63,613 nucleotides of DNA, filler included, from Octopus bimaculoides (GCF_001194135.2; 6 parts of 6 records of this genome joined end to end with filler, not necessarily neighbours in it); one strand, 5' to 3'; numbered from the whole stretch's first letter, positions 16,528 to 36,454 are shown. Notes: generated by a model not told the origin, from the letters alone. Program-made: numbers and translations.

Positions 16528-17224
16528 GTCGGTCTGTCTGTCCGTCTCCCCCTCTCTCTTTCATATATATATGAAGGGTCGTTCTTTATGTTACTTGTCC
16601 TGTTTTCCATTTGTTTCTCTCGTTGTTTGCGTATTGAACTCATTTGTTTTCGTATTTCATGTTGTTTACTGTTGGTGACGTCCTGTACCCATATATGCAT
16701 ATATGTGTGTGTGTGTGTGTGTGTGTGCGTGTGTGTGTGTGTAACTTAGCGGTTCAGCAAAAGCGAACGATAAAATAAGTACTTGGCTTACAAAGAATGG
16801 GGNNNNNNNNNNNNNNNNNNNNNNNNNNNNNNNNNNNNNNNNNNNNTTAATTAATTAANNNNNNNNNNNNNNNNNNNNNNNNNNNNNNNNNNNNNNNNNN
16901 NNTTAACAAGCCCACTTTGCAACCACATGGTTTTCAGTTCAGTCCCTCTGCATGGTACGTTGAGTAAAAAATGTCTTCTGCTTCAGGACAATTCCCCCAA
17001 ACGACAACTACCCCCTCTCCAATATATTACAAAATTTTAAATCATCATCTGTTGTCCTCAGGGGTAATTGTCCATGAGGGGTAAATCTCCTTTATATATA
17101 TATATATTGTATTTCGGGATGGTTATTTTTTTTTTTTTTTTTCCAAATAAACACACACACTAAATAATTTTTCTTCACTCATTTATTACTGTTCTTATTT
17201 TATTATTTCTTTCTATTCCTAAAG

Positions 17225-17466
17225 CTGGAACGTCTCAAAGACCCATTAGTTTGGCTTGATGCTGCTGCTCAAATATTTTACTCTTTCGGTTTGGCTTTCG
17301 GTGGATTAATTGCCTTTGCCAGTTATAACAAACCAACCAATAACTGCCAGACTGATGCCATTGTTGTCTCCATTTGCAACTGGTTGACTGCCATCTACGC
17401 ATGCCTCGTGATCTTCTCAATTCTTGGTTATAAAGCTACACTAATGTTTGAACACTGTCTGTCACT
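17225..17466 (+). CDS. SLC6 (NSS) transporter, B0AT/SLC6A15-20-like; exon encoding TM6-TM7
   Basis: taaag|CTG acceptor and CT|gtaagt donor. Reads [80 protein letters not shown], with the SLC6 motifs W.DAA.QIF.S and ASYN...NNC..DA. Absent from the ORF track because it has no early Met. Confidence 0.96.
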
Positions 17467-17971
17467 GTAAGTACTTATTCTAACTCTGCATTTCCTCATT
17501 GTGCTCAAAATCTAAATAACCATTATGTTCACCATCATCGTCATCACCATTGTCGTCGTCGTCGTCATCATCACCACCATTTACCATCCACTTTTCCATG
17601 TTTGCATGGGTCAGACAGAATTTGTTGAGGCTCATTTTTTTACAGCTGGGTGCCCTTCTTGTCACCAACCCTCACCTGTTTCCAAGGTGACACTCATTTG
17701 CAACCATCACATGAAGTCAAATCAAAGAGATAGTAAACACACACACACACACACACACACAAGCACCAACCCAAACACAGACATGCACATGCACACAGCC
17801 ATAGTTAATAAAATAAAATACCAGCCAAATGAGAGTGGAGTGGAGTGGTGGGGGTCATATATTCAATTGTTCTTTTCCCGCCAAATTTGTAACCTTGTGC
17901 CTTTGTAAGAAATCAGTGTTAATTATTAAAATATCATTTAATTTTTTTTTTTTTTTCTTCTCTAATTTCAG

Positions 17972-18122
17972 TAATGCAATTAAAATCACAAAATATTTTC
18001 CTCACATAAATATGACAGAATACGCTGGTGAAGCAGTGGACTACACAACTCTTGGAATACCCAGTGACAAATTGAAAGATTTGGCTCTCATCAAATGTGA
18101 TTTACAAGAAGATTTGAACAAA
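17972..18122 (+). CDS. SLC6 exon: extended extracellular loop 4
   Basis: ttttcttctctaatttcag| acceptor (phase 2) and AAA|gtaagc donor (phase 0). NAIKITKYFPHINMTEYAGEAVDYTTLGIPSDKLKDLALIKCDLQEDLNK. The long EL4 with an N-M-T sequon and CDL...L motif is typical of the B0AT/SIT branch. Confidence 0.93.
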
Positions 18123-18847
18123 GTAAGCCTGAAGTTTTAAATTTTGCTTGTTTATTGATTTGGTCAGAAGAAAAAGGGGCAGCACTTATCAACTTTTTCT
18201 GGGCCTCCAATACTGGTAGGAGAAAGGGACCTATGAGCTGGCCCAAATGCTTATAATATAGTGGTCCCTGCTTAAAGCTGCAGGTGAAGGCATGTGCCTA
18301 GTGGTTAGGGTGTTTCTCTCAAAATCACTAAATCATGGGTCTGATTCCTGGCACATTGTGTTCTTGATCAAAATACTCCATTCCACATTGGTCTGTTGGT
18401 GGCAGAGTGGCAGAATTACTAGCATGTTGGCAGAGATGCTCTATGGTATATCCTCTGGCTCTCCACATTCTGAGTTCAAATCCCACCTGCCTGGAGAAGG
18501 CAATGGGAAACCACTCCAGTGTTTGTCCTAGGTCAAGTCATGGTAGCCAAGGTTCCAGTAATCTACTTAATGGCAGCAGGAGAGGGTATGAGTCCTCTCA
18601 GATAGTGTAGAGAGCACTGTAGAAGGTCTACATGCACAGGGCTTGCCCAAGAGCAGACCACCACAAGATTAGGTTTAAAGCACCAAAGGGCCAGGGGTTG
18701 TGGTAAGAAGGCTGACAGACCAAGTCTATCGCTGTGTTAAAAATAAAAAGGAACTGGCTACAACCGAGGCAAAGCTAACTCCTCACTCTCACAACTATAC
18801 ATAATCCTATATGATGAAAATTATTTGTAATATTTATCTCTAAATAA

Positions 18848-19085
18848 AGCAGGGAGCTGGCAGAATCATTAGCATGCTGGGAAAAATGCTTGGGTGGCGT
18901 TTCATCTGTCTTTACATTCTGAGTTCAAATTCCACTGTGGTCAACTTTGCTTTTCATCCTTCCAGGGTTGATAAAATAAATACCAGTTGAACACTGGGGA
19001 GTGGGGTGGCGTGGGTCAATGTAATTGATTTGCACTCCCTGCCCCCACCCCACACCAAATTGCTTGCCTTGAGCCAAAATATGAA
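18848..19085 (+). mobile_element. SINE family A in SLC6 intron
   Basis: GGGAGCTGGCAGAATCATTAGCATGC...TTCTGAGTTCAAATTCCACTGTGGTCAACTTTGC. Confidence 0.85.
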
Positions 19086-19179
19086 ATCAATATTCAGCCT
19101 AAATTACTAGTTATAATTTAAGGGTCTTTTCTATTTTAATTGAATATATATATATATATTCTTTTATTTTTTTTATTCT

Positions 19180-19540
19180 TTTACTTGTTTCGGTCATTCG
19201 AATGCAGCCATGCTGGAGCATCACCTTTAGTCGAACAAATCGACCCCAGGACTTATTCTTTGTAAGCCTAGTACTTATTCTATCAGCCTCGTTTGCCAAA
19301 TTGCTAATTTACGAGGACATAAACACATCAACGTCAGCTGTCAAGCAATGGTGGGGGACAAACACAGACACACATGCAAATATATACACACACAAATATA
19401 TATATATATACTACAGGCTTCTTTCAGTTTCTATCTACCAGATTCACTCACAAGGCTTTGGTCAGCCCGAGGCTATAGTAGAAGACGCTTGTCCAAGGTG
19501 CCATGCAGTAGGACTGAACCTGGGACCATGTGGTTGTGAA
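19180..19540 (-). mobile_element. SINE family B in SLC6 intron
   Basis: Reverse complement of the family B body and tail (CAGCCATGCTGGAGCA...CGACCCCAGGACTTATTCTTTGTAAGCCTAGTACTTAT). Confidence 0.85.
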
Positions 19541-20799
19541 AACTTCCAGAGATGTAATAATTGCTGAGAGTTTTATAGTTGTAGGACGAATACAGAGGAG
19601 AGCCTGAAGGCTAAAACCCTGTCACAAAAAATACAAGGGATACATGGCCCCTTGATATTTTGTAATAAGAAGCAAGTTAACATTAATCTTTTCGACTCTA
19701 GGCACAAGGCCTGAAATTTTGGGGGAGGGGGCAAGAATTTGGTATATCACACCATTCTTCTCCAGATATTAGAATCTAAAGTTTTGAGACATGCAAACAT
19801 GTGTACCGTATTTTCTGTCTTATAAGCCAAATATTTCTGATTGAAATTTACTGCCCAAAAAAGGTAGGTTGACTTAGGCACGAAAACAACTTTAAGAGGA
19901 CCCAAAAATTCCATGTGAAATGCAACAGGATTTGCAAAGAGAAATGATGTTTGTTTATGCTACATGTTTATATTATATTTACTATGTTGACTTGTATGCC
20001 AGAAAATATAGTATATTTGTATGTAGGTATATGTATANNNNNNNNNNNNNNNNNNNNNNNNNNNNNNNNNNNNNNNNNNNNNNNNNNNNNNNNNNNNNNN
20101 NNNNNNNNNNNNNNNNNNNNNNNNNNNNNNNNNNNNNNNNNNNNNNNNNNNNNNNNNNNNNNNNNNNNNNNNNNNNNNNNNNNNNNNNNNNNNNNNNNNN
20201 NNNNNNNNNNNNNNNNNNNNNNNNNNNNNNNNNNNNNNNNNNNNNNNNNNNNNNNNNNNNNNNNNNNNNNNNNNNNNNNNNNNNNNNNNNNNNNNNNNNN
20301 NNNNNNNNNNNNNNNNNNNNNNNNNNNNNNNNNNNNNNNNNNNNNNNNNNNNNNNNNNNNNNNNNNNNNNNNNNNNNNNNNNNNNNNNNNNNNNNNNNNN
20401 NNNNNNNNNNNNNNNNNNNNNNNNNNNNNNNNNNNNNNNNNNNNNNNNNNNNNNNNNNNNNNNNNNNNNNNNNNNNNNNNNNNNNNNNNNNNNNNNNNNN
20501 NNNNNNNNNNNNNNNNNNNNNNNNATATATATATATATATATATATAAATATTGGTGTGTGTGTATAAATATCTGTGTATGCGTGCATGTATGTGTATAT
20601 ATATATGTATGTGTATATATATATGTGTAAAGTTTTTTTCTTCTTTTTGCTAATCGTTTTGCTGTCCCGATGCTTGTGCATCAGACAAAAACAGCATCCC
20701 AGACATGTGCAAGTCCATTAATCGTGTGCAGTATTATTTTACTTGCACAAAAAGCCAATGAATCGATTTGTTTTGTGTCCTCTTTTTCTTGTGTTGTAG

Positions 20800-21007
20800 G
20801 CCGCATCAGGAACAGGTTTGGCTTTTATTGTCTTTGCTCAGGCAATTGTTGAATTTGGTCCGTCCTCACCCTTTTGGTCGTTCATCTTCTTCCTCATGCT
20901 TCTTGCACTCGGTCTTGGCACCGAATTTGCTACACTCGAGGGAATCGCTACATCGATCAGAGATTCCTCTCCTTATCAGTGGACAAAGACGAAGTGGAAG
21001 TTGTCTG
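20800..21007 (+). CDS. SLC6 alternative exon A (EL4 end-TM8-IL4), 208 nt
   Basis: cttgtgttgtag|GCC acceptor and TCTG|gtaaat donor, phase 0 to 1. [69 protein letters not shown](G). Confidence 0.93.
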
Positions 21008-21136
21008 GTAAATTTCTCCTCTCATTTTTTTTTCTTTTTTATATCATTGATGAAACAGTTTTTTTTTTTCTTTGGATTGAAGAATATTAAATGCCATCTT
21101 CATTATTTTTTTTTTCCAATTTGTTATTTCTTTCAG

Positions 21137-21344
21137 GCTGCTGAAGGTACAGGATTAGCATTCATTGTGTTTACACAGGCCATTCTTGAGTTTGGCGATT
21201 CTGCTCCATTCTGGTCAATCATCTTCTTTCTAATGCTTCTTGCTCTTGGTCTTGGGACAGAGTTTGCAACGATTGAAGGGGTTGCTACATCCCTGAGAGA
21301 CGTTGCTCCTTTCGAATGGATGAAGAAACGCTGGCTGCTTTCTG
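21137..21344 (+). CDS. SLC6 alternative exon B (EL4 end-TM8-IL4), 208 nt
   Basis: ttatttctttcag|GCT acceptor and TCTG|gtaaat donor, phase 0 to 1. [69 protein letters not shown](G). Confidence 0.93.
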
Positions 21345-21464
21345 GTAAATGCTAACAAGAAACAACAACAACAACAACAAATGATACCTTGTTGTCGTTG
21401 TTGTTGTTGTCCACAATCCCTTAGTAATCAATAGCAGCTAGTCTTTTAGTCTTTTTAGTTGTAA

Positions 21465-21508
<44 letters not shown>

Positions 21509-21960
21509 GTCCTATTTGTGTAATTAGTTTTGTAGCATTATTAGCAGCCTTTTATTTCATTGTCTTTGTTATCTGTCGATTGTCATTTCCTTATTTCCTT
21601 GGCCTAATTACCATTCCATTATTATTACTGCTTGTCTTCTTTCTCTTTGTCACACCCCACTCGTCCACCCATCTACCCTCTACACCAGTATGCACTTATT
21701 AGTGATTTCGTTTGACAAGGAGCAAAGCCAATTCAGGCAGGAGAAAAAAAGAAGAATACACAGTGAGGATTATAGACAATTAAATCAAGCTCGATACTCG
21801 TTTTATTGATCCTGGAGTGGATTGACAATGGCCTCAACTGTTCAGGCTTGGGGTTAAATGAAAAAGTAAACCAAGTGAATTAAGACAAGCTACAGATACG
21901 ATTGCACTATGGATGATATATATCTATATATATACATACATATATATAAATATGTGTGTG

Positions 21961-22010
<50 letters not shown>

Positions 22011-23846
22011 NNNNNNNNNNNNNNNNNNNNNNNNNNNNNNNNNNNNNNNNNNNNNNNNNNNNNNNNNNNNNNNNNNNNNNNNNNNNNNNNNNNNNNNNNN
22101 NNNNNNNNNNNNNNNNNNNNNNNNNNNNNNNNNNNNNNNNNNNNNNNNNNNNNNNNNNNNNNNNNNNNNNNNNNNNNNNNNNNNNNNNNNNNNNNNNNNN
22201 NNNNNNNNNNNNNNNNNNNNNNNNNNNNNNNNNNNNNNNNNNNNNNNNNNNNNNNNNNNNNNNNNNNNNNNNNNNNNNNNNNNNNNNNNNNNNNNNNNNN
22301 NNNNNNNNNNNNNNNNNNNNNNNNNNNNNNNNNNNNNNNNNAGATGTAAGAAGTGTAAGCCTGTGTCCTGTGGTACATGTACTACCAGCATGTATTTAAT
22401 TTTGGCCTGATGGATCTTGAGGTCATACATGTTCTTAAACACTTTGCCACATTCATTGAGATCAATGTATCTCAAATAATGACAATGTTTCACTGGAATC
22501 TGTATCAAACCAATCATCCACTCATTTACTTTGGTTCTTTAATTGCTTCAGTTTGTAAGAAAACACTTCCACTCTTTGGCTTGGAAATCACTGATTCATA
22601 GGTCCCTGAAAGGAAAAAGCACCCAAATATCACATTCCAGGCAAAACAAATGAACCCTTAACATTTATGTAGTGACTGTGATTTATTTCACAACATGATT
22701 TTCTTATTTATAATTCTGTGTGTGTGCATGCATGTGTATGTATTGTAGTCCAAATGCAAGCAATGTGTTCCCTCAATTTCTGGTTTCAAATCCTACCAGG
22801 GTCAATAAAATAAGTAAATAATTAAGTCTCATGTATTAACCCTCCCACAATATTTGTAGCTTTATATCTAAGCTAGAAGTAACAACCATTTTTCCTTGCT
22901 GGAATCCTGTCAGTAAGTTATGGTTCATTTAATTCTATTTATTTCACTGTCCACTTTTTTTGGTGTCTGCTAGTTTGTTTTGCTATTCACTGTCCATTTT
23001 TTTTATTTTTATTTCACATCATTGTACACATTTCAACCTGCAACAGTTTATATAATACTTTTGTAACATATAACATATTGTTACATTCTTATCCTGTGTG
23101 TATGTATTTCTCCTTTGGCAGAGCTATTTGAGACACATACACACAGAGATACATGTGAGCATGCTTGCATACTGCTCTTATTTTTGTCTTTTTATTCATT
23201 AAAAATGAACGGAATATTTCCGTTAATTGTATTTCTATCAAACGAATGTGTCATTTAATAACAGCAACTAAAATTAACAGCAATATTTGCTTTGTGGCAA
23301 AGATATATTTCCTCACTTGATTCTCCAAATCTCATTTGATGGTCATCAGACAACTTAACTATTTCCTACATGTTTCATATAATTTGATAAATTGCTTCAC
23401 ATGTAACATCATTTATATCATTTCATTTATTATATTCATATAATGGAAACCTTCTTAGTTGCTGTTATTATCCAGGGGAGTTTCCTTATACACGAGGGTT
23501 CCTTATACATGTTAAAATACGGTACATATCAGCTGAGCACCAGGGACAATGTAACCAACTTGCCCCTTCCCCCTAAAGTACTGGCCTTGGGCCAAAATTC
23601 GAAACCAATGTGATGCATAATAAAGTCATTTTTTTATTATTATTTTTATCAAAATAAAATAAATAAAAAAATTAGATTGGAAATTTCATTGTGAGTCTGT
23701 AAGATTTGGGATCTTTTGGAAAAAACTGGAATATGTATCTGAGGATAATGAAGCATACCTGTAAACACGTTTATTGTTTATTTAAACCCACAAAAAAGCT
23801 GTTGTCTGGAAATTAATTTGTATTTTTTTTTTTATTTCTTGTTTAG

Positions 23847-24006
23847 GTGTTTTGTGTTTGTTCAGTTTTGTGGTTGGAATCGTTTTCACGCTCAACAGTG
23901 GTGCTTACTGGGTTGAACTTTTCGACTTTTTCTCTGGAACATTTGCACTAATGATTGTGGCCTTGTTAGAAATTCTAGCAGTTTCTTACAAATACGGTAT
24001 CAACAA
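23847..24006 (+). CDS. SLC6 exon TM9-TM10
   Basis: tttcttgtttag|GT acceptor (phase 1) and AA|gtaagt donor (phase 2). (G)VLCLFSFVVGIVFTLNSGAYWVELFDFFSGTFALMIVALLEILAVSYKYGIN matches the SLC6 SG.YW..LFD and E...V...YG motifs. Confidence 0.95.
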
Positions 24007-25590
24007 GTAAGTATGACATGAAAAATTAAAATCAATATTTGTTATTAAAATGTGCCATTTAAAACGAATACATCTAATTACTGGAAGCAATTAAATGAAA
24101 AAGGAAACAAGGGGGGGGTCTCCCTTATCTCGAAACGAGTGGAAGGGAGGCAATTCATGGTGACTAGGTTTTCATTCTTTCTTTAATGGGAAGAACAGAG
24201 AAAGAGAAGTGGTGTTTATCGCTAAAATACACTTGTTATTCTCCCTGTTATCGTTGTTCTTATTTTTAGTAAGAATTGAGATTGAATTATGGACAGTCCA
24301 AACGTCTTTTTCCTGAAATTTCATCAGGTACATGCCTAAAAAAAAAAAAACCGAAGAAATTCTAATTTAGTAAAACATTATATGGTTCTAATTAGTATAA
24401 TAAAATTTAACTACTTAATCCTGCTAGATTAAAAATTATTACAAATACCGTTTTAGATATACTTAAGTGCCATGTTTATAATTTTATTGCTGTTAACAAT
24501 TAAATAATCTAGCTTCTTCACCTAAGAACATCATGAAATTAAGCTTTTAACTGCAAAATTAGATTTTATGGTTATTCTAGTAATTATGTTGAATATCCAC
24601 CAAAAAATAGATTTAGTATTTTTGCAAGCCTAGTTGCCTCAATAAACTTCACATATCTCAACAAAGAAAAAAGTTTCAAGCTTGACATTCCTCGACAAAA
24701 GATAGGTTGGTAACATTAAACTGCTTTCTGCTGTTGAGAGAATTAAATTTTTGGTCAATGTGTCTGGTTTCTGTAGAGACAGCGTTAAATATAGAAACAC
24801 ATTTAGCAAATAGAATTATTTGTTTTCCTGAACACAGTTCATCCCTGTACAAAGCTACTTTAGTAGCAAACACAACAATGGTTGAAACCTTTTCATACCA
24901 AGCACCTCCCAATCAAACCGTCTCTTGTTCTATGACACAAATTTCCTGTTTTAAATTAAAGCCTTCCATCAAAATTTATGTTAATCTATGTTCCAGCCAC
25001 CAGCCTGTTGATAACACAATTATTTAGTTTAAATTCTTTGTTATTTCCAAAATCAATTGAAACAAAGAAATTTGGTTACAAATAGGTTAACATAAATTGT
25101 TAACATTTTTTGCTGGATCAATTACAACACCTTTTTCAGGGAAAAAAAAATGGTGGGGTGGATTGACAAAATCAATAACTTCAAAGGGTGGGAGTGGATT
25201 GTTTATGTGCAAACAGCATTATTATTTGCAACGAATTGTATCTGGTGGTTGTTGCAGATTTATAGGTTTTTGTATGACTGATACATGAAAGAACATTTGC
25301 TGCATAATCATTACCTCTAAATAAGTAATGATTACTTCTAAATAATCATTATTTCTAAATAAGCTGAGAAAGATTCATAAAAATTCCTTAAACACATTGA
25401 TAATTTCAGTTTTGTAGGGTTGTTTAAGGGGTGTGGTAGAATGTAAGAAAAACAAAAACAAATATTTTCCTTGCAAGCGAGAAATAAACTTTGAAATATT
25501 ATGTAGTGTAATATAATTGTGTGTGTGTGTGTGTGAGAATTACTGTCTGATAATGACTTTGATGTTTTTGTCTTTTGTTTCCTTTCACAG

Positions 25591-25753
25591 CTTTTGTAAT
25601 GATGTATATGGAATGATTGGGAAAAGACCAAACATAATTTGGCGAGTTTTGTGGAAGTTTATTGCCCCTGCTCTTATTCTCATTCTTCTGGTGTCCACCA
25701 TTATAATGAAGTTTATCGATCCTGTTACTTATAAAGCTTACAACAAAAACGAG
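25591..25753 (+). CDS. SLC6 exon IL5-TM11
   Basis: cctttcacag|C acceptor (phase 2) and GAG|gtgggt donor (phase 0). FCNDVYGMIGKRPNIIWRVLWKFIAPALILILLVSTIIMKFIDPVTYKAYNKNE carries the F..D...M.G..P...W...W....P motif. Confidence 0.95.
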
Positions 25754-27266
25754 GTGGGTTTCTTTTATTTATTTTTTAAGCATTATCTTTTATTTCTTAA
25801 CCTCACCCCCACCCTCAGCCTCACATCATCCACTCACAACCTTTGCACCACACCCCAAATCCATGCTTATGCTTTAGTGTGCCTCTAAACTAGTGCTCTG
25901 CTAGTGAGCAAGCGCTGCATACAAACAAACTAACTAGACACACGTACGAAACAAGTAATAGTAATTTTTCCTGCGTTCATTTTTCTGGCCGCTATGCATT
26001 AACGGGTTAAGACACCGAATGGGCTTCTACACAGGGGAGATCACTCTGATGGACTGATAGGTGCCAAGGGAAACAACCCAATATGCAAACATTTTCGAAA
26101 ACGAAATTCTGCAGAGAAATCAAATTTTAGATCATTTTAGCAGTTTCAGAAGCAGTTAAAGGATCCAGAAGTATTATTTCAATCAAACACACCCATATTC
26201 TTAGCTCCGTTAATATTCAAAGGATTTCTGTTCATGATGATCCAGATTATGGAGACAATTTCGCTACTCGCTAATTTCCATATCAACTGCGACAAATAGA
26301 TAGAAATATGTACGTATGCATGTGTGTGTATACGTACGTGTGTATGTATGTATGTATGTATTCATGTACGTACTGACGAAAATATTTTCCTGAGACTGTA
26401 TACATACATACATTACAGATGCACGCACATACACACACACAGTCCTTCTTCCTCCTATGAATAAATATATTGATGTTCGTATGTATGCCATTACCCCTTA
26501 AATTATTTGCTACCACTTTCCACAATAGTAACAACACCTTATTCATTGAATAATGTAGTTCTAGATACAATGTATCGAGAAAAACTATGATGGAATGGCC
26601 GTGAATGGACCATCTATAATCATAAGTTCTTTCTGTTTTATTTATTAAGGATGATCTGGGTCTAAACAACTAGAAGCTGTACAGGGCAGGCCAAAAGTCA
26701 CACACCAAAACATATGGCATTTTATTTGAGTTACGATATCTTAATATATAAAACAGAGTTTTGTGTGTTTGTGTGTTTGTGTGTGTGCGCGCGTACATGC
26801 GCGTATGTTCCTCATGGAAAGCCAACCTCCGACTTGCGACTGAATTTGGTAGACGGAAACTGCAGCGTTGTTCATCAGAAAATGAGCAAAAAACATGTTT
26901 ATAAAGAAGAGTTGTTTGCTTCCTATTCCTTGTGTGCCAATTTTACTCATGAGAAAGAAACAAGTAATACAATAATTCTACCCATGAGAAAGAAACAAAT
27001 AATACAATGTGGCATCGCCGGGATGCATTGCTAGCTAATATTATTCTTTTTGTCCATAATGTATAAGTACATGTGTATTCATCATTATTTTATTTGTTTC
27101 ATTCAATTTTAGAAAAATCAATCCATGTCTTCAACAATTCCGGAGCGTATTGAACCTATTTTGTCCATGATTTTTGGCCCACCCCCCAGTATATTTCTTT
27201 CACAGCATTGCTGTGAAATCTGCCTCAGGTTTTAACAAATATTTTTTGTTTTATCTTCTTTTCCAG

Positions 27267-27560
27267 GCTGCTTTGTATGATATGCAATACCCTCTCTTTG
27301 CTAGCCTCATTGCTGGGTTCCTGGTCTTGCTGCCGATAGTTTGGCTGCCAGGAATAGCTCTCACCCGGCGCTTTGGAATGTTCAGATATGAACCAGAAAC
27401 AGCACCAATCGGTATGGAAGGAATCATTAGTTCCAGAACAGCATTTGTGGATGTCACAGACAATGCATCTGAATGTACAAATGGTAGAAAATCGGTGATA
27501 CATGCAACATCAGATGGAACAAGACTTGCAAAGCCGAGAAGTGGGGAAAATTTTGTATGA
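27267..27560 (+). CDS. SLC6 terminal coding exon (TM12 and C-tail) to TGA
   Basis: cttcttttccag|GCT acceptor (phase 0). AALYDMQYPLFASLIAGFLVLLPIVWLPGIALTRRFGMFRYEPETAP...KPRSGENFV*. YP motif before TM12. Phases chain correctly through all exons. Confidence 0.92.
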   Translation, partial: AALYDMQYPLFASLIAGFLVLLPIVWLPGIALTRRFGMFRYEPETAPIGMEGIISSRTAFVDVTDNASECTNGRKSVIHATSDGTRLAKPRSGENFV

Positions 27561-28102
27561 AACCATGATTTAATTTTTTTTTTTTTTTAATGTTTGTGTC
27601 TGCAGAAATTTGAACACAGCAAAATGACTTATTCTTATATTATTAATAGAAAAAAGAAATTCTCAAATAATGAAATGGATGATTCTAACTTTTGAACAAT
27701 TATGTGTATATATGAATGTATGTAAATGTAATGAGTGAATGTGTGCAGGAAAGAAAGATAGAGTGAGAGTGAGAGAGTGAGAGAGAGGGAGAGATAGAGT
27801 TGAAGTGTAACCGTATATCTTCAATATAAAGACTTGATTGTATATATAACTGTATATATGTATCTATATGCATATGGATGTGTTTATTGGTGGCAGTGTG
27901 TAAACACATTTATAAATGTGTGTGTGTGTGTATGAAAGGATGGTATGTAGACTATGGCATAGCAAGCATTTTCAGTGTCTGGGGTCAAAGACTCTTTTAG
28001 CACTTCCACCTTTTAAGTAACCAACATGACAGACCAGAAGAAACTTTACATCCTTTCCCTCCTGGGTCCAGAGGGAGAGGAGACTACTCTACCCACTCTC
28101 TT

Positions 28103-28168
<66 letters not shown>

Positions 28169-29428
28169 GTTATGCCTCTCTGTATAGACGTGTGCTCATG
28201 TAAAGAATTGCTCAAACGATAGTTGGTCTTCATTCATGTAAAATATATATATATATATATTTATAATTCCAAACTGAGAATTTTATACTGAACAAGCTCT
28301 GACGTTGGTTAGCAATGTTTTCTCTTATTTGGTTTGTAATTGTGCCAGAGATTGGTGTGTTTCTTGACAACAGCGAAGGGTTTCTCTCACCTTAGTTACT
28401 AACAGCTTCTGTGTCAAACTCCAATTAACATCATACATTAGTTTGGCTGCTAGTTTCTTGTGTCATGTCTGAGCTTGAAAACATTTTATAAGATTAAAAT
28501 GTGATAAATGGTTGATTTAATGAGTACCTGGCCTGAAGTACAACAAAGTTAATGAAAAATAATTTCTATCTATCATGGACNNNNNNNNNNNNNNNNNNNN
28601 NNNNNNNNNNNNNNNNNNNNNNNNNNNNNNNNNNNNNNNNNNNNNNNNNNNNNNNNNNNNNNNNNNNNNNNNNNNNNNNNNNNNNNNNNNNNNNNNNNNN
28701 NNNNNNNNNNNNNNNNNNNNNNNNNNNNNNNNNNNNNNNNNNNNNNNNNNNNNNNNNNNNNNNNNNNNNNNNNNNNNNNNNNNNNNNNNNNNNNNNNNNN
28801 NNNNNNNNNNNNNNNNNNNNNNNNNNNNNNNNNNNNNNNNNNNNNNNNNNNNNNNNNNNNNNNNNNNNNNNNNNNNNNNNNNNNNNNNNNNNNNNNNNNN
28901 NNNNNNNNNNNNNNNNNNNNNNNNNNNNNNNNNNNNNNNNNNNNNNNNNNNNNNNNNNNNNNNNNNNNNNNNNNNNNNNNNNNNNTTTGGCTGCTAGTTT
29001 CTTGTGTCATGTCTGAGCTTGAAAACATTTTATAAGATTAAAATGTGATAAATGGTTGATTTAATGAGTACCTGGCCTGAAGTACAACAAAGTTAATGAA
29101 AAATAATTTCTATCTATCATGGACAGTATGAAGTACACCATGTATAAGCATTATTTCTCTTTATAACCACCAAAATTGCTGACATATGTCTCACCTTTTT
29201 GACATGTTGATACAGAGCTGTTTAATTTTAGTAGCATTATGAAATTTTAAGTTTTGAATTACAAATAATTAATTTATATATGCGTAATTGCTTGGCCACT
29301 GGGTTCCCTATCAAATATATATGTGTGTGTGTACAGACAGCAGAGCTTGGTGCATTCTTTGAACTTGCCAGTTCCTGTCACACCATCCGACCCATGCCAG
29401 CATGGAAAACAGATGTTTAGTGACTATG

Positions 29429-29473
<45 letters not shown>

Positions 29474-30069
29474 ATATGAGAATGCTTGTGTAAATAGATA
29501 TCCATGAATGCCCTTGTTGATGATTCCTTTTAAAAAAAGAAACGTTCCTTCCCTTCTCATACAACATAACACTTACAAAGAATTATAAAGCATTCAGTGT
29601 TTCGAAATAATTCTTCACTAATCCCAAAGGACCCAGACACAAAAACACCTGTCAAAATTACCTTCAAAAGTGAAAGGGATTTNNNNNNNNNNNNNNNNNN
29701 NNNNNNNNNNNNNNNNNNNNNNNNNNNNNNNNNNNNNNNNNNNNNNNNNNNNNNNNNNNNNNNNNNNNNNNNNNNNNNNNNNNNNNNNNNNNNNNNNNNN
29801 NNNNNNNNNNNNNNNNNNNNNNNTATATATATGTACATATATACAAAAATATACATATATGTATACATACATATTCATATACATACGTGTGTAATATATG
29901 TGACCACATGACCTACCAGATTTTCAGATGTTGTTACGCATCACTGGCCACAATACACTTTGCCACTAGGCCACATACCAGCATATATATATATATATAC
30001 ACACACACACATACGTATATATAGACACACACACATATGTATATTTATATATATATATATAGATATATA

Positions 30070-30116
<47 letters not shown>

Positions 30117-30143
30117 NNNNNNNNNNTATACATATACATATAC

Positions 30144-30202
<59 letters not shown>

Positions 30203-30861
30203 CATAAATATACAGGGTACTCACAAAGTCTGGGTACATGGGGATTAACACATACTTTAAGAAATTTTTATTTCTTATATTTAATTGTTTATGTTATGAT
30301 TTTATTTACACCATGTACCCAGACCTTGTGGACACCTTGTATATATATTTATATATATATATAAGTGCACAAGTACTTGTACACATACTCACATACATAC
30401 ATACAGGCATACACATACACACACATGTATATATATTTCTTCAGTTTTGTCTCCCTTTTATTTTCTAAGTTTTTCTCCATTGTTTTTCATGGCATTTGTT
30501 AATTCTTCCTCACATTCAAATTAGTTATTCATGTTATTACATTTTTATAACAATCAAAAAAAAAAAAAGTATTTCCATGTTATATTGTTATATCTCTTTT
30601 TTTTTTTATTCTATATTTAACATTGATATCAGTTGTTTTCTGCCATATTTTTTTTTCATTTAACAATTAATACAAAAAGTACATTTGTTTTTGTTTTTTT
30701 TTGGTTCCTTCTTTTTTGATGCTGTATAAAAATCCTCAGTAGTTCTCTTACAAATCATCTCCAAATTTTCTATCACATTTGTAGACAAAGAACAGAGGGT
30801 GGAGTGTAAGATTTCTCTACAAATGAGTTTCATAATCTAGTTGTTATTTTTATTATATAAC

Positions 30862-31137
30862 ATGGTGAGCTGGCAAAAATCATTATATGCCGGGCAAAAT
30901 CGTTAGCATGCCAGACAAAATGGCTTACCAGCATTTCATCCGTCTTTACATTCAGAGTTTAAATTCCATTGTGGTCCACTTTGCCTTTAATCCTTTCAAG
31001 ATCAATAAAATAAATACCAGTCAAGCACTGCGGTGGATGTAATCGATCATCCCCCTCTCCCAAAATTGCTGGCCTGGTGCCAAAACTTGAAACCATCATC
31101 ATTATTATCATCATTATTATTATCATTATTATTATTA

Positions 31138-31171
<34 letters not shown>

Positions 31172-32116
31172 CTAAGGTGGTGAGGTGGCAGAATTGTTAG
31201 AATGTTGGGCGAAATGCTTCATGGTATTTCATCTGCTGCTACGTTCTGAGTTCAAATTCCACTGAGGTCAACTTTGCCTTTCATCCTTTCGGGGGTCGAT
31301 GAAATAAGTACTAGCTACGCACTGGGGTCGATGTAATCGATTAGCCCCCTTCCCAAAAGAAAATTTTCAAGGCCTTGTGCCTAGAGTAGAAATAATAATA
31401 ATAATAATAATAATAATTATTATTATTATTATCATTATTATTAAGGCGGCAACCTGGCCAAATCATTAGCAATAGCAGGTGAAATGCTTAGTGGTATTTT
31501 GTCTGCTGCTACATTCCGAGTTCAAATTCCAGTGAGGTTGACTTTGCTTTTCATCCTTTCAGGGTCAATAAATTAATTCCCAGCAAAAGACTGGGGTCGA
31601 TGTAATCAACTAATCCTCTCCTCTGTAACTTAAAAGCTTTCAGTCTTGATAAAAAAAAAGAATGATTGAGGAAAAATTGGTTTTATCAGAAGGATGGCTC
31701 TGGAGGTGTGTGAGACGGTGGAAGTAGACAGTTGGACCAATATCTGCACAAGATTATCGTTCAGTTTTGTCCCTCTGCATTTTACTTCAAGGATCACCTT
31801 ATCTATTCATTGTTCTAGCATTAAGAAGTATTTTGTACTGGATTCAAGTGTAAGCAAGGGTGTGGGTGGGTACTTCTCAAGATATTTACTCATTGTTCCC
31901 AGGGCTCCGACAATTATTGGTATTACTTCCACCTTTTTCATTGACCACAACTGCTTAACCTCCCAAGCTAACCTGTCACATCTATCGACTTTTCTTTCTT
32001 CCTTATCAAATACCTTGTTGTCAACTGGGCATGGTATATCTATGATCCAGCATAGTTTGCTTTCTTTCTCCATTAAGACTAGGTCTGGCTTCCTATTCTC
32101 TATCTCATGGTCGCAC

Positions 32117-32156
<40 letters not shown>

Positions 32157-33385
32157 TCATTAACCATCAAAAGGCAATGAGCTGGCAGAATCCTTAGCCT
32201 AACAGGTGAAATGCTTAGTGGCATTTTGTCCTTCCTTAAATTCTGAGTTCAAATTCTGTTGAAGTCAGCTTTGCCTTTCATCCTTTCAGGGTCAATAAAA
32301 TAAGTACCAGCTGAGTACTGGGGGTCAGTGTAATTGACTCACTCCATCTCCCATGAAATTTCTGGCCTTGTGCCAAAATTTGAAACCATTATTATTTGTC
32401 ATTGAGCTGGTGGCGATTGTATTTTTATTCTCCGGTGGAGTCCTTAGATTGTCAGAGTGCCTTGCAGTATTAAGTTATGATCTTTTATGTTCTGAGTTCA
32501 AATCCAGCTAAGGTTAGCTTTGCCCTTTCATCCAAATAAGTTCTAATCAAGAATTGGGTCAGGAATGGGGCGGGGGGGTCTATATAATTAACTGCTTTTG
32601 CTCCACAGTCTCTGCTCTTCTGCTTCTGTACCAAATTTACTGTTATTACAATCTGCAGAATCGGCAGAATTGGGAGAACAAAACAAAAACAAAACAAAAA
32701 AACATATCTTTTGAAATATATAGTTTATGTTGTGTGTTCAAATCTTGCCAGGGACAACATTTTAATTCATACTTCTGGGGATGGTAATGTTAAGTACTTG
32801 TCAGATTCTGGTGCCAGTCTAATTAACTATACCCCACCACCACCACCACCACTCACACCTTAAAGTGTATGTCTTTCTGCTTATGTCTAGAATCATCATT
32901 CTTATTGAGGCTGCAAGTCTGCAGAATGGTTAGCATGTTGGACAAAATGCTTTGTCGCATCTTTACGTTCTGAGTTCAAATTCTGTTGAGGTTGACTTTG
33001 CCTTTCATCCTTTTGGATGGGAGTCAATGAAATATAAGTACCAGCTGAGCACTAAGGTAGGTATAACTGACTAGCCTTCACCCTAAAACTTCAAGCCTTG
33101 TTACTATAGTACTCATCACCATCACCATCATCATCATCATCATCATTATTATCATCGTAATCAGAGAGCTGAATTATTACCAAGGGTGACTGAGTGGCAG
33201 AAGTGTTAAGAGTATCAAACGAAATATTTTGCCGTATTCAACTATGGCTCTTTGTGTTATGATTTCAATTCTCATACCTTTCACCTCTACAAGGTTGATA
33301 GAATAAAGTACCAGTGAGGTACTGGGGCTGAGATAATTGAATACCCCCTCCCCCAACTCCCTCAAAATATTTGTGCCGAATCTGA
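30862..33385 (+). repeat. Cluster of about 8 same-orientation SINE family A copies spaced by (ATT/ATC)n
   Basis: Heads near 30862, 31174, 31443, 32172, 32400 (partial), 32650 (degenerate), 32905 and 33184. Confidence 0.8.
31790..32120 (-). mobile_element. Non-LTR retrotransposon C-terminal restriction-like endonuclease fragment (R4/Dong/NeSL-type)
   Basis: NRKPDLVLMEKESKLCWIIDIPCPVDNKVFDKEERKVDRCDRLAWEVKQLWSMKKVEVIPIIVGALG shows the PD..D motif, KE.EK...Y-like motif and P...GALG. Confidence 0.8.
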
Positions 33386-34129
33386 GAGATTTAGAAATGT
33401 ATGATTTCTATGTCCAAAGTTATCCCAACTGTAGAAATAAAGAACTGACTCACTCCTTAATTAAAAATTTCAGAGTTATCTCCCCCTGCCTTTTTTATTT
33501 TAAGAGAAATGAATGTGTGTGTGTGTGTGTTGATAAAGATTTCACTAAGACAAAGTGATACTAATAATTTGGTGGTAGTACTCAACATACATTTGCTTCA
33601 GAATAAAATGCTGGCCAAGTACAGAGCATAATATAAAATTCAATAAATAACTGTGGAACATGAAATTAGGCAATGAGCTTCTTCTATGTTAGATAAATAC
33701 TACCATACATTGATACTGTGTGTACTAAGATCTTCATTGACAGATTACTGACATGTACTTAGTTACTTAGGTCAAGTCTCTCAATTTGGATGGTAAAAGT
33801 TGTGATATCACTTTGGTGCAGTAGTTAGCTCGGCTATACAGCTTACAGCAGATTACAACATTCAGATCTTCTTTGCTGGTTTCTATATTAGCTATATTAT
33901 TTTATTCTGAAAACGAGGGGCAATAGTTATGTATTGCTTGTGAGCATGATGCATAGAGTTACATATGTATTTTCATATGTATAGTGACTCACTGTGTATT
34001 GATGCTGTCATGACCCCCTTCCAGGATGTGACTATCATAAATATTCTCGCTGTCAGTATCATCATTGTCATCGTCATTGATATAATATTTATCTCATTGT
34101 TTATATCTTCCAGTCACCTCTGTCCTTAA

Positions 34130-34720
34130 GGCAAGACTAATTATACCTCAGATTTCAGATAGCAAAATCTCTGAAAAATAGCAAACGATGTGCCTCTGGG
34201 CGTTATTAGACTGTGCAAAACTGCAAATATTTCACTAAAATGTGGAAATTATCCTTGTGTAGTTGGGCATTGTTGTTAAATCAACCATTTCCAGCGTTTT
34301 TTTTGCATTTTTCTCAAAATGTCATTTCAGATTATGAGTAGTGATCTTTAGGTCACGATATCTCTGAGAATAATTGATATAATAGGCTGAAATTTTGCAT
34401 GTGTATTACTTTGATAGTTGCCTAGATGTTGTTTTAGTGTGATTAGATATGCTTCATTTGTTCATCTTCCAGAGACACTTGAATGCTACTACAAAGGGGT
34501 GAAAAACACTTGAACTGCTGCATATGGCTATGAGTGACCCCACAACGAAATCTAGGCCAACTTCATCAATGTCTTTGGTCCAGCATCTAGTCTGTACCCC
34601 AATAGGACTAACATTGTTCTTGATGTATGCCATATTTGGTTTGCCTAGGTTTTATTCCCGCTGAGTGAGAGCATCTTCAATTTAGGGGTGTTTTCCTACG
34701 TCTGAGGTGTTAGTCTTGCC
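34130..34720. mobile_element. Non-autonomous TIR element, Kolobok-like
   Basis: TTAA|GGCAAGACTAA..ACCTCAGA ... TCTGAGGTGTTAGTCTTGCC|GTAA. About 25-bp TIRs with GG...CC termini and TTAA/(G)TAA flanks. Confidence 0.6.
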
Positions 34721-36407
34721 GTAAGGCAAATATTTCTTGATGAGATATCATTAAATGTCCCAGTTTGTGTGTGAATGTGTTTGTACAGACATACCACAAG
34801 TGAATAAATGCACATTGGTGTATGCATTACAAGTAAAAAGTATTCAATACAAGCTGAAAGGTGAAACTCAGAAATTACATTCATAAATTTTCAGCGACTT
34901 TTATTAAATTTATATACAAGGCAAGATGTATAAATTTACGGAATTATTGTGTTTTCACAGCATGAAACTATTGGTAGCTCACATTTAAATACTGTGGATA
35001 TTAAATGACATTTATCTTTCACGGGATGGCGTATATTTTTTTTTGTTCATCCTACAAATAACAGAACAGAACTACACACACACACACGCACACAGACACA
35101 GACACATGTGTATGTGTGTATATATGTATGTATATATATATATNNNNNNNNNNNNNNNNNNNNNNNNNNNNNNNNNNNNNNNNNNNNNNNNNNNNNNNNN
35201 NNNNNNNNNNNNNNNNNNNNNNNNNNNNNNNNNNNNNNNNNNNNNNNNNNNNNNNNNNNNNNNNNNNNNNNNNNNNNNNNNNNNNNNNNNNNNNNNNNNN
35301 NNNNNNNNNNNNNNNNNNNNNNNNNNNNNNNNNNNNNNNNNNNNNNNNNNNNNNNNNNNNNNNNNNNNNNNNNNNNNNNNNNNNNNNNNNNNNNNNNNNN
35401 NNNNNNNNNNNNNNNNNNNNNNNNNNNNNNNNNNNNNNNNNNNNNNNNNNNNNNNNNNNNNNNNNNNNNNNNNNNNNNNNNNNNNNNNNNNNNNNNNNNN
35501 NNNNNNNNNNNTATATATATATAGATAGATAGATAGATAGATATAGGTAGATAGATAGATAGATATACACACATACATACATATATATAAATACTATATT
35601 TATGTCTTTATATATATATGTGTGTGTCTGTGTGTATGTGTCTGTATATATATACACACACACACACACATGATCAACTATTTTAATGTTTGTGTTGAAA
35701 GGGATAACAGATGAACATTAAAAATATTGATGGCTCTTTCTACAACTCCTTATATACGCTGTGTGCATATGTGTATACATATACATACAATATGCAATCA
35801 CAAAAAGAAGTAATATATTTTTGTGCTTTTGTCAATAAAACTGACCTTTAATTAAATTAAATTAACTCTTTCATCCTGTTAATGCGTCTAAGTTCACCTT
35901 TAGTCAAAATGAGCCTGTGAATACTTTCTTTTTTTTTTTTTTTTACGAATACTGATCAAGAGTAAATATTATAAAACTACAATTTCAAAATTAAATATTG
36001 AGGTTTTGGACACCCTTTGTGAATATTACAGATTTTTTTATTTTTAAGATAAATGTAAGGTGCTTATGCATGCATTAGTGTACAGAGTTATGCTTGAGTG
36101 TATATGAGGGTCATCTTATGCATAGAATTATGTCAAAAGTGGCTGAGTATTGGTGATGTAGAGTTAGTGTGACATTGCATTCTCAAGGCTTAACTCTGCC
36201 CTTTTGAATTACGAGTATATTCCTTTTAATGGGCTTCCAAATACTTTCTGTCAGGCTGATTTTACTCGTCAGGTTTCTGTTAAGTCTGAGGTTTTGGAAG
36301 AAGACATTTCTTGGCAGAAGCATTGCACTCTAAGATTTGATCTGGGACTTCAAGATTGCTAGGGAAACTTTTTAACCATTCACTCACACACATGATTGTA
36401 CCTGCAT

Positions 36408-36454
<47 letters not shown>

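Follow-up and report, generated by a model that had tools for sequence, protein, structure and literature searches.

The window analysed in this study is a stretch of 63,613 nucleotides, filler included, in which six pieces of the Octopus bimaculoides genome are joined; all positions are counted from its first letter. One of these pieces (16903-36454) contains the 3' half of a plus-strand gene and is identical to Octopus bimaculoides GCA_001194135.2, CM046617.1, 28.64-28.69 Mb, gaps included. The chromosome-level record of the species has the same assembly gaps at this locus. The 405 C-terminal residues assembled from the exons match the Pfam SNF profile (PF00209) at 3e-77 in a profile search with a cut-off of 27 bits, and the gene is a member of the SLC6 or neurotransmitter:sodium symporter family. 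Its closest database proteins are entries from O. bimaculoides, O. sinensis and O. vulgaris that are named B(0)AT1, B(0)AT3-like or XTRP3-like. Among the solved structures, human B0AT1 (SLC6A19; 1e-78) and SIT1/XTRP3 (SLC6A20; 1e-69) are nearest, while GlyT (1e-50), NET, SERT and DAT (1e-40 to 1e-47) as well as the GABA transporters are placed behind them. The full-length O. sinensis isoform was modelled with AlphaFold2 (pLDDT 76, pTM 0.77); the model has the LeuT-type fold with 12 transmembrane helices (TM) and is superposed on SIT1 and B0AT1 with TM-scores of 0.87-0.93; in this comparison, the ranking by fold agrees with the ranking by sequence, with B0AT1 and SIT1 ahead. By likeness, the gene appears to encode an O. 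bimaculoides SLC6 protein that belongs to the B0AT1/SIT1 (XTRP3) branch, a group of amino-acid transporters which depend on collectrin/ACE2. The features of the locus are as follows.

17225-17466, plus strand: exon E1, upstream constitutive exon, TM6 to TM7, with an AG acceptor, a GTAAGT donor and an open frame that aligns with B0AT1 and octopus proteins
17972-18122, plus strand: exon E2, upstream constitutive exon, extracellular TM7 extension and EL4a, ending in phase 0 (...DLNK/gtaagc; the slash marks the splice site)
20800-21007, plus strand: exon A, alternative exon of 208 nt, the derived copy, ending ...KWKLS
21008-21136, plus strand: T-rich intron of 129 nt between A and B
21137-21344, plus strand: exon B, alternative exon of 208 nt, the ancestral-like copy, ending ...RWLLS
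21142-21144, plus strand: TGA met when both A and B are included
21361-21408, plus strand: predicted hairpin of 19 bp, (CAA)n/(UUG)n, which begins 17 nt past the exon B donor and adjoins B only
23847-24006, plus strand: exon E4, downstream constitutive exon, TM9-TM10, with the acceptor that A and B share
23949-23951, plus strand: TAA inside E4, met when neither A nor B is included
25591-25753, plus strand: exon E5, constitutive exon, TM11
27267-27560, plus strand: exon E6, last coding exon, TM12 and C-terminal tail, with the stop codon at 27558-27560

The two alternative exons share the same anatomy. Both run from splice phase 0 to phase 1, both have a length of 208 nt (3n+1), and 129 nt lie between them. 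The acceptors (...tgttgtag/GCC in A, ...tctttcag/GCT in B) are preceded by strong polypyrimidine tracts, the donor is the same in A and B (TCTG/gtaaat), and the E2 donor after 18122 is common to whichever of the two exons follows it. A and B are identical at 144 of 208 nucleotides (69%) and at 52 of 69 amino acids (75%), and 29 of the 52 identical residues are encoded by synonymously different codons. The differences fall on the first, second and third codon positions in the proportion 15/8/41; this bias is a signature of coding constraint, not of chance. Searched against the piece with tblastn, the peptide of each exon finds the other copy at an E-value of about 1e-33, and no third copy is detected within the piece. 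N gaps lie beside the pair (20038-20524, about 300 nt upstream, and 22011-22341, about 670 nt downstream), and a third exon copy may be located inside one of them; no third isoform type occurs in any species examined. TA/TG-rich microsatellites also flank the pair (20525-20640 and 21916-22010). They abut the N gaps and are probably what lies behind them.

The length of the exons has direct consequences for the reading frame: as 208 equals 3n+1, the inclusion or the skipping of both copies puts a stop codon in frame. Joined to B, exon A ends in ...KWKLSGC followed by the TGA at 21142-21144, and a direct junction of E2 to E4 leads to a frameshift and to the TAA at 23949-23951. If exactly one of the two exons is spliced in, the frame is open from 17225 to the stop codon at 27558-27560. 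Productive mRNAs contain a single exon of the pair only. The original prediction had described two intact 208-nt exons with this spacing, these phases, good acceptors and a shared donor, and these details were all reproduced; its counts of identical residues and of synonymous codon differences were the same upon recounting, and the two stops that it had foreseen, one after the residues G-C upon joint inclusion and one in the TM9 exon upon double skipping, were found in their places.

Annotated isoforms and transcripts of related cephalopods reveal how the pair is used. In O. sinensis, the RefSeq isoform X1 (XP_029647067.2) contains exon A alone, and X2 (XP_029647066.2) exon B alone; X2 is identical to CAI9735209.1 from O. 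vulgaris, the proteome of which also includes an isoform with exon A alone (CAI9735210.1). In both species, the sole difference between the two isoforms is the use of A or B. The O. bimaculoides copies correspond closely to those in the O. sinensis isoforms, with 69/69 identical residues for B and 68/69 for A. In the cuttlefish Sepia esculenta, a 678-aa orthologue with 79% identity is encoded by Logan transcript contigs; the species was identified through their run accessions, which appear in PMC10442824 and PMC9538352. Among the eight contigs examined, an A-like exon is present in six (L003-L008) and a B-like exon in two (L001, L002). The B contigs depart from L003, the reference A contig, at 61 of the 208 nucleotides of the exon slot (CDS positions 1207-1414); outside this slot, the contigs show 0-2 differences from L003 in 1829 nt, all of them synonymous. 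Furthermore, the 3' UTRs of the A and B forms are identical, and their 5' UTRs match apart from a short A-run difference. The contig counts (A about 82, B 2) suggest that the B form may be minor or narrowly expressed. At CDS position 1836, both B contigs have a C (AGC) and six of the six A contigs examined a T (AGT); this association of allele and isoform is odd, but probably reflects a polymorphism together with a sampling effect.

One member of the pair per transcript, with each member seen, is thus what holds in the S. esculenta contigs and in the annotated isoforms of O. sinensis and O. vulgaris, in agreement with the earlier claim that exactly one exon is used. For O. bimaculoides itself, the use of both exons is supported by orthology (the O. 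sinensis/O. vulgaris protein is 97% identical), by the intact splice sites and by the frames. We are highly confident that A and B form a tandemly duplicated pair of mutually exclusive exons (MXEs), one of which enters each mRNA, so that two full-length transporters are made. The two predicted transporters differ in 17 of about 690 residues, which are distributed over EL4b, TM8, IL4 and the beginning of TM9.

How old is the duplication? In other molluscs, the orthologue loci of Haliotis rubra (abalone), Argopecten irradians (scallop) and Pomacea canaliculata (apple snail) contain a single copy of the exon, which is more similar to B (72-77% identity) than to A (67-68%). A protein search centred on exon B retrieved single-exon ORFs only, all of them from non-cephalopod invertebrates; in these the exon boundaries are conserved, and the comparison with them shows that B resembles the ancestral form. 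In invertebrate genomic fragments, the boundaries around AxEGTGLAF...WLVSG are apparently widely conserved. The exon was then compared column by column with 27 homologues from outside the cephalopods. A and B have in common several states that are found in cephalopods only, namely Ala36 (Ser in others), Thr41 (Ser), Ala44 (Gly in 27/27) and Arg54 (Tyr/Phe), which suggests that the duplication came after these changes on the stem. Other residues are specific to one copy in both octopus and cuttlefish, i.e. S3, A13, S23, F28 and L46 in A, and an acidic residue in place of Pro at position 21 in B; as these are common to both lineages, the duplication would predate the divergence of Octopodiformes and Decapodiformes, about 250-300 million years ago. 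Hence, it appears to have taken place in the cephalopod stem lineage, later than the separation from gastropods and bivalves but earlier than that of octopus and cuttlefish.

The direction of change can also be read from the homologues. At positions 3, 13, 23 and 28, the ancestral residues are kept in B and changed in A (E3S, T13A, A23S, I28F), and the four A states replace residues that are near-invariant among the 27 homologues (e.g. T13 in 26/27). A is the derived copy and B the ancestral-like one. The divergence of exon A in IL4 is restricted to the octopus lineage; the A exon of Sepia has the ancestral-like SLRDAAPYDWMKKRW. We report pN against pS in place of a formal dN/dS because of the saturation at synonymous sites, with pS >0.75 in almost every pair. 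In every pair, pS amounts to 0.70-0.86, which is at, near or beyond saturation, whereas pN is 0.105 between the A exons of octopus and cuttlefish, 0.062 between their B exons, and 0.12-0.16 between A and B. These values point to purifying selection on both copies across the two lineages, with B apparently the more constrained, and neither copy seems to be decaying; the old duplication under purifying selection that had been predicted from the octopus sequence is borne out. Gene conversion between A and B was considered and rejected, as identity is even along the exon in octopus and in cuttlefish. No residual similarity was detected between the intron flanks of A and those of B.

In the AlphaFold2 model, the exon comprises residues 392-460, i.e. 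the EL4b helix (398-409), TM8 (411-447), a short IL4 helix (451-454) and the first residues of TM9. This mapping confirms the assignment to EL4-TM8-IL4 made in the original prediction and adds the first turn of TM9. B0AT1 residues are given in native numbering, which equals the chain numbering of 6M17 minus 20 and was checked on F277 and M423. Exon position 33 (Met) aligns with M423 of B0AT1, and positions 41 and 45 (Thr and Thr) align with S431 and N435; all three are identical in A and B. Position 46 (Leu in A, Ile in B) aligns with M436, and position 28 (Phe in A, Ile in B) with V418, towards the outer end of TM8. The A/B differences that are conserved between the lineages (3, 13, 21, 23, 28) are located in EL4b and at the extracellular end of TM8. 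Of the differences that had been claimed for EL4 and IL4, both sets are present; the differences shared by the two lineages are those in EL4b and outer TM8, and the IL4 difference is peculiar to octopus exon A.

In B0AT1, S431 and N435 form hydrogen bonds with the side chain of the Gln substrate, and the C-terminal end of EL7-8 shifts on substrate binding while the outer path closes (PMC10491607). The vestibule (S2-like) pocket of B0AT1 is walled by TM1b, TM7, TM8 and EL7-8, and M423 on TM8 touches the inhibitors of this site (PMC11341722). By alignment, the conserved differences between the octopus isoforms would occupy the C-terminal portion of the EL7-8 lid as well as outer TM8, the region expected to move with closure of the outer gate. 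Because the aligned substrate-contact positions are identical, a functional difference is likelier to concern gating, kinetics, apparent affinity, allosteric modulation or regulation through IL4. Most likely, the isoforms would differ in outer-gate dynamics, in apparent affinity or turnover, or in modulation at the vestibule site; those of octopus may also differ in an IL4-dependent property, and a change in ion coupling or in the core substrate site seems unlikely. A more far-reaching proposal, which we put forward tentatively and with considerable doubt, is that this is the first described SLC6 pair of mutually exclusive exons, a natural domain swap about 250-300 million years old in which about six fixed residues in EL4b and outer TM8 retune gating, apparent affinity or S2 modulation and the two forms are used in different tissues or life stages.

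The opposing view is that the exons are truly alternative, but that their proteins are equivalent, the pair being kept for the place or time of expression or for a regulated unproductive splicing that tunes the mRNA level. We consider this rather improbable, but it deserves attention: the positions aligned to S431, N435 and M423 are the same in A and B, most of the 17 differences are conservative, and the frame design makes the products with both exons or with neither natural substrates of nonsense-mediated decay. However, the six copy-specific residues are fixed in octopus and cuttlefish despite synonymous saturation, and four of the A states are found at sites that hardly vary elsewhere. Taken together, these two observations point to selection on the protein differences themselves.

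It is much harder to maintain that one of the copies is a decaying or unused pseudo-exon in O. bimaculoides, which we regard as very improbable. The B form accounts for just 2 of about 84 S. esculenta contigs; yet in O. bimaculoides both frames are open, both AG acceptors have strong polypyrimidine tracts, the GTAAAT donors are identical, the copies match those used in the O. sinensis isoforms at 69/69 (B) and 68/69 (A) residues, and both seem to have been under purifying selection across the octopus-cuttlefish split.

The RefSeq models of O. bimaculoides suggest yet another arrangement, since both of them span A and B. In XP_052830102.1, the exons are strung together via a GKFL linker, and taken at face value EL4b-TM8 would be repeated in tandem in the protein; the older model, XP_014772322.1, spans both exons with exon A read out of frame. 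The linker, however, could arise only from a non-GT donor and the inclusion of 11 nucleotides of the intron, the canonical splice from A to B leads to a stop after two codons, an additional transmembrane helix would invert the topology of TM9-12, and the transcripts of the sister species and of cuttlefish have one copy each. Joint inclusion is thus extremely improbable, and both models are wrong at this locus, an error that gene predictors often commit at mutually exclusive exons; they should be replaced by two isoforms. That the second copy is an artefact of assembly, i.e. a haplotype or a collapsed repeat placed in tandem, can be practically dismissed in spite of the nearby N gaps, as the copies differ at 31% of their nucleotides, mostly at third codon positions, and three further cephalopod species have both versions.

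If A and B are mutually exclusive, each mRNA would contain either of them, spliced to the E2 donor (18122) on one side and to the E4 acceptor (23847) on the other, products with both exons or with neither would be expected to undergo nonsense-mediated decay, which is frequent in this class of exons, and the choice would presumably be set by trans-acting splicing regulators, by local RNA structure or by both. Two of the known mechanisms do not apply here. The best branch-point candidate in the A-B intron is TTCAT with the A at 21102, and no other yUnAy match occurs in the 50 nt before the 3' splice site; this A lies 34 nt from the B acceptor and 95 nt from the A donor. Steric hindrance, which takes effect when donor and branch point are less than about 50-60 nt apart, is not compatible with this distance of 95 nt in an intron of 129 nt. 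Incompatibility of U2 and U12 splice sites, with a donor of the type (A/G)TATCCTT, was rejected too, given that all donors are GTAAGT, GTAAGC or GTAAAT and the acceptors are of the polypyrimidine-AG type. A third mechanism relies on competing RNA structures, in which a single docking sequence can pair with a selector beside each alternative exon and the pairing is conserved between species. An inverted-repeat scan of 18123-23846 for such docking and selector pairs returned N runs and TA/TG microsatellites only; the microsatellites were set aside as a looping structure, because their complementarity follows from (TA)n being self-complementary. The A-B intron (21008-21136) has no stable structure (z = +0.6), and Rbfox-type TGCATG motifs are absent from 20600-21600. 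The hairpin predicted past exon B (21361-21408) is more stable, with -25.5 kcal/mol, a z-score of -4.5 and 0 of 200 shuffles as stable; it may be a modulator of B usage or an incidental microsatellite palindrome.

A few further observations concern the completeness of the gene and its surroundings. An exon of the TM5 region (37 residues) that O. sinensis, O. vulgaris and Sepia all have is absent from the O. bimaculoides models. A search of the piece did not recover it, and it is most likely located inside the 5047-nt N gap just upstream of the piece start at 16903 (L016 33537-38583). At the other end, the 689-aa isoforms of O. sinensis terminate in ...GENF/NFKHSYEKQCRNKDAEIITAQCQKF, as against ...GENFV followed by the stop codon, which suggests an alternative donor (TTT/GTATGA) in the last codons of E6 (27552-27560) and a further 3' exon. 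Such an exon was not found in the piece; it would help to account for the span of the gene in O. sinensis and O. vulgaris, which amounts to about 119 kb.

An interspersed repeat with a length of about 190 nt occurs in at least five copies (18845-19040, 30893-31064, 31174-31358, 31444-31627 and 32171-32323), one within the intron that precedes exon A and four clustered downstream of the gene, with partial copies near 23514 and 33296 and a mean column identity of about 70%. With its B-box-like GAGTTCAAATTCC motif it has a SINE-like look; ARAGORN calls no tRNA in it. Within the downstream cluster, two ORFs overlap on opposite strands (31807-32073, minus strand; 31694-32197, plus strand). The product of the minus-strand ORF (...VIPIIVGALGTMSKYLEKY...) resembles the tail of a retroelement ORF, but it has no Pfam match.

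The preferred reading, a pair of mutually exclusive exons in an SLC6 transporter gene, has to be seen against what has been described before. Our literature search yielded no paper on this exon pair or on SLC6 splicing in cephalopods, and in the main text of the human MXE catalogues no SLC6 gene was found. The event is undescribed in papers, yet its isoforms are annotated in O. sinensis RefSeq and in the O. vulgaris annotation. The original prediction knew of no such pair at this SLC6 exon; this stands as regards publications, but not as regards databases, where the sister species already has X1 and X2. Current understanding is not overturned by these results, as the design is the commonest one among MXEs and the isoforms of the sister species are public. 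What the pair offers is a natural structure-function experiment on an SLC6 protein, with transporters that are identical except for EL4b-TM8-IL4 and with about six fixed differences, which adjoin the vestibule pocket, a drug site in human B0AT1.

The octopus proteins resemble human B0AT1 and SIT1 in sequence (43-44% identical across some 580 aligned residues) and in architecture, i.e. the 12-TM LeuT fold with a long TM7 extension and the EL7-8 insertion. In contrast to octopus, which has two forms of the segment, the solved human sequences have a single one, and in TM8 the octopus LGLGTEFAT stands against LGLSSMFGN in B0AT1. Insect XTRP3/B0AT3-like genes belong to the same SLC6 branch and likewise have alternative RefSeq isoforms X1 and X2; however, the isoform pairs of Bombus and Hylaeus differ by a 7-residue insertion in EL2 (AVTIKFN or AVTVKFG) and not by a swap of the TM8 exon. 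This insertion looks like a conserved micro-exon. Outside the SLC6 family, mutually exclusive exons swap a homologous internal segment in SLC7A2 (CAT-2A/CAT-2B), SLC25A3 and NCX1, so that isoforms of the same architecture are made, and the segment swapped between CAT-2A and CAT-2B is reported to change substrate affinity. These genes belong to unrelated folds and families and serve only as a lead to what the octopus isoforms might differ in.

The closest parallel is found in the general class of tandemly duplicated MXEs. Pairs in which joint inclusion breaks the frame have been catalogued in human, Drosophila and C. elegans (PMC5740500, PMC3228551, PMC9741552, PMC4165533), and membrane transport proteins are enriched for MXE events (PMC9741552). 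As in this class, the octopus exons are adjacent, homologous, equal in length and phase, and used one per transcript; their length is not divisible by three, so that joint inclusion or skipping leads to a premature stop; and the duplication appears to be ancient, with both copies conserved in a membrane transport gene. What differs is the restriction of the event to cephalopods. The pair thus adds a lineage-specific case, probably from the cephalopod stem, to the membrane transport proteins that diversify through tandem exon duplication.
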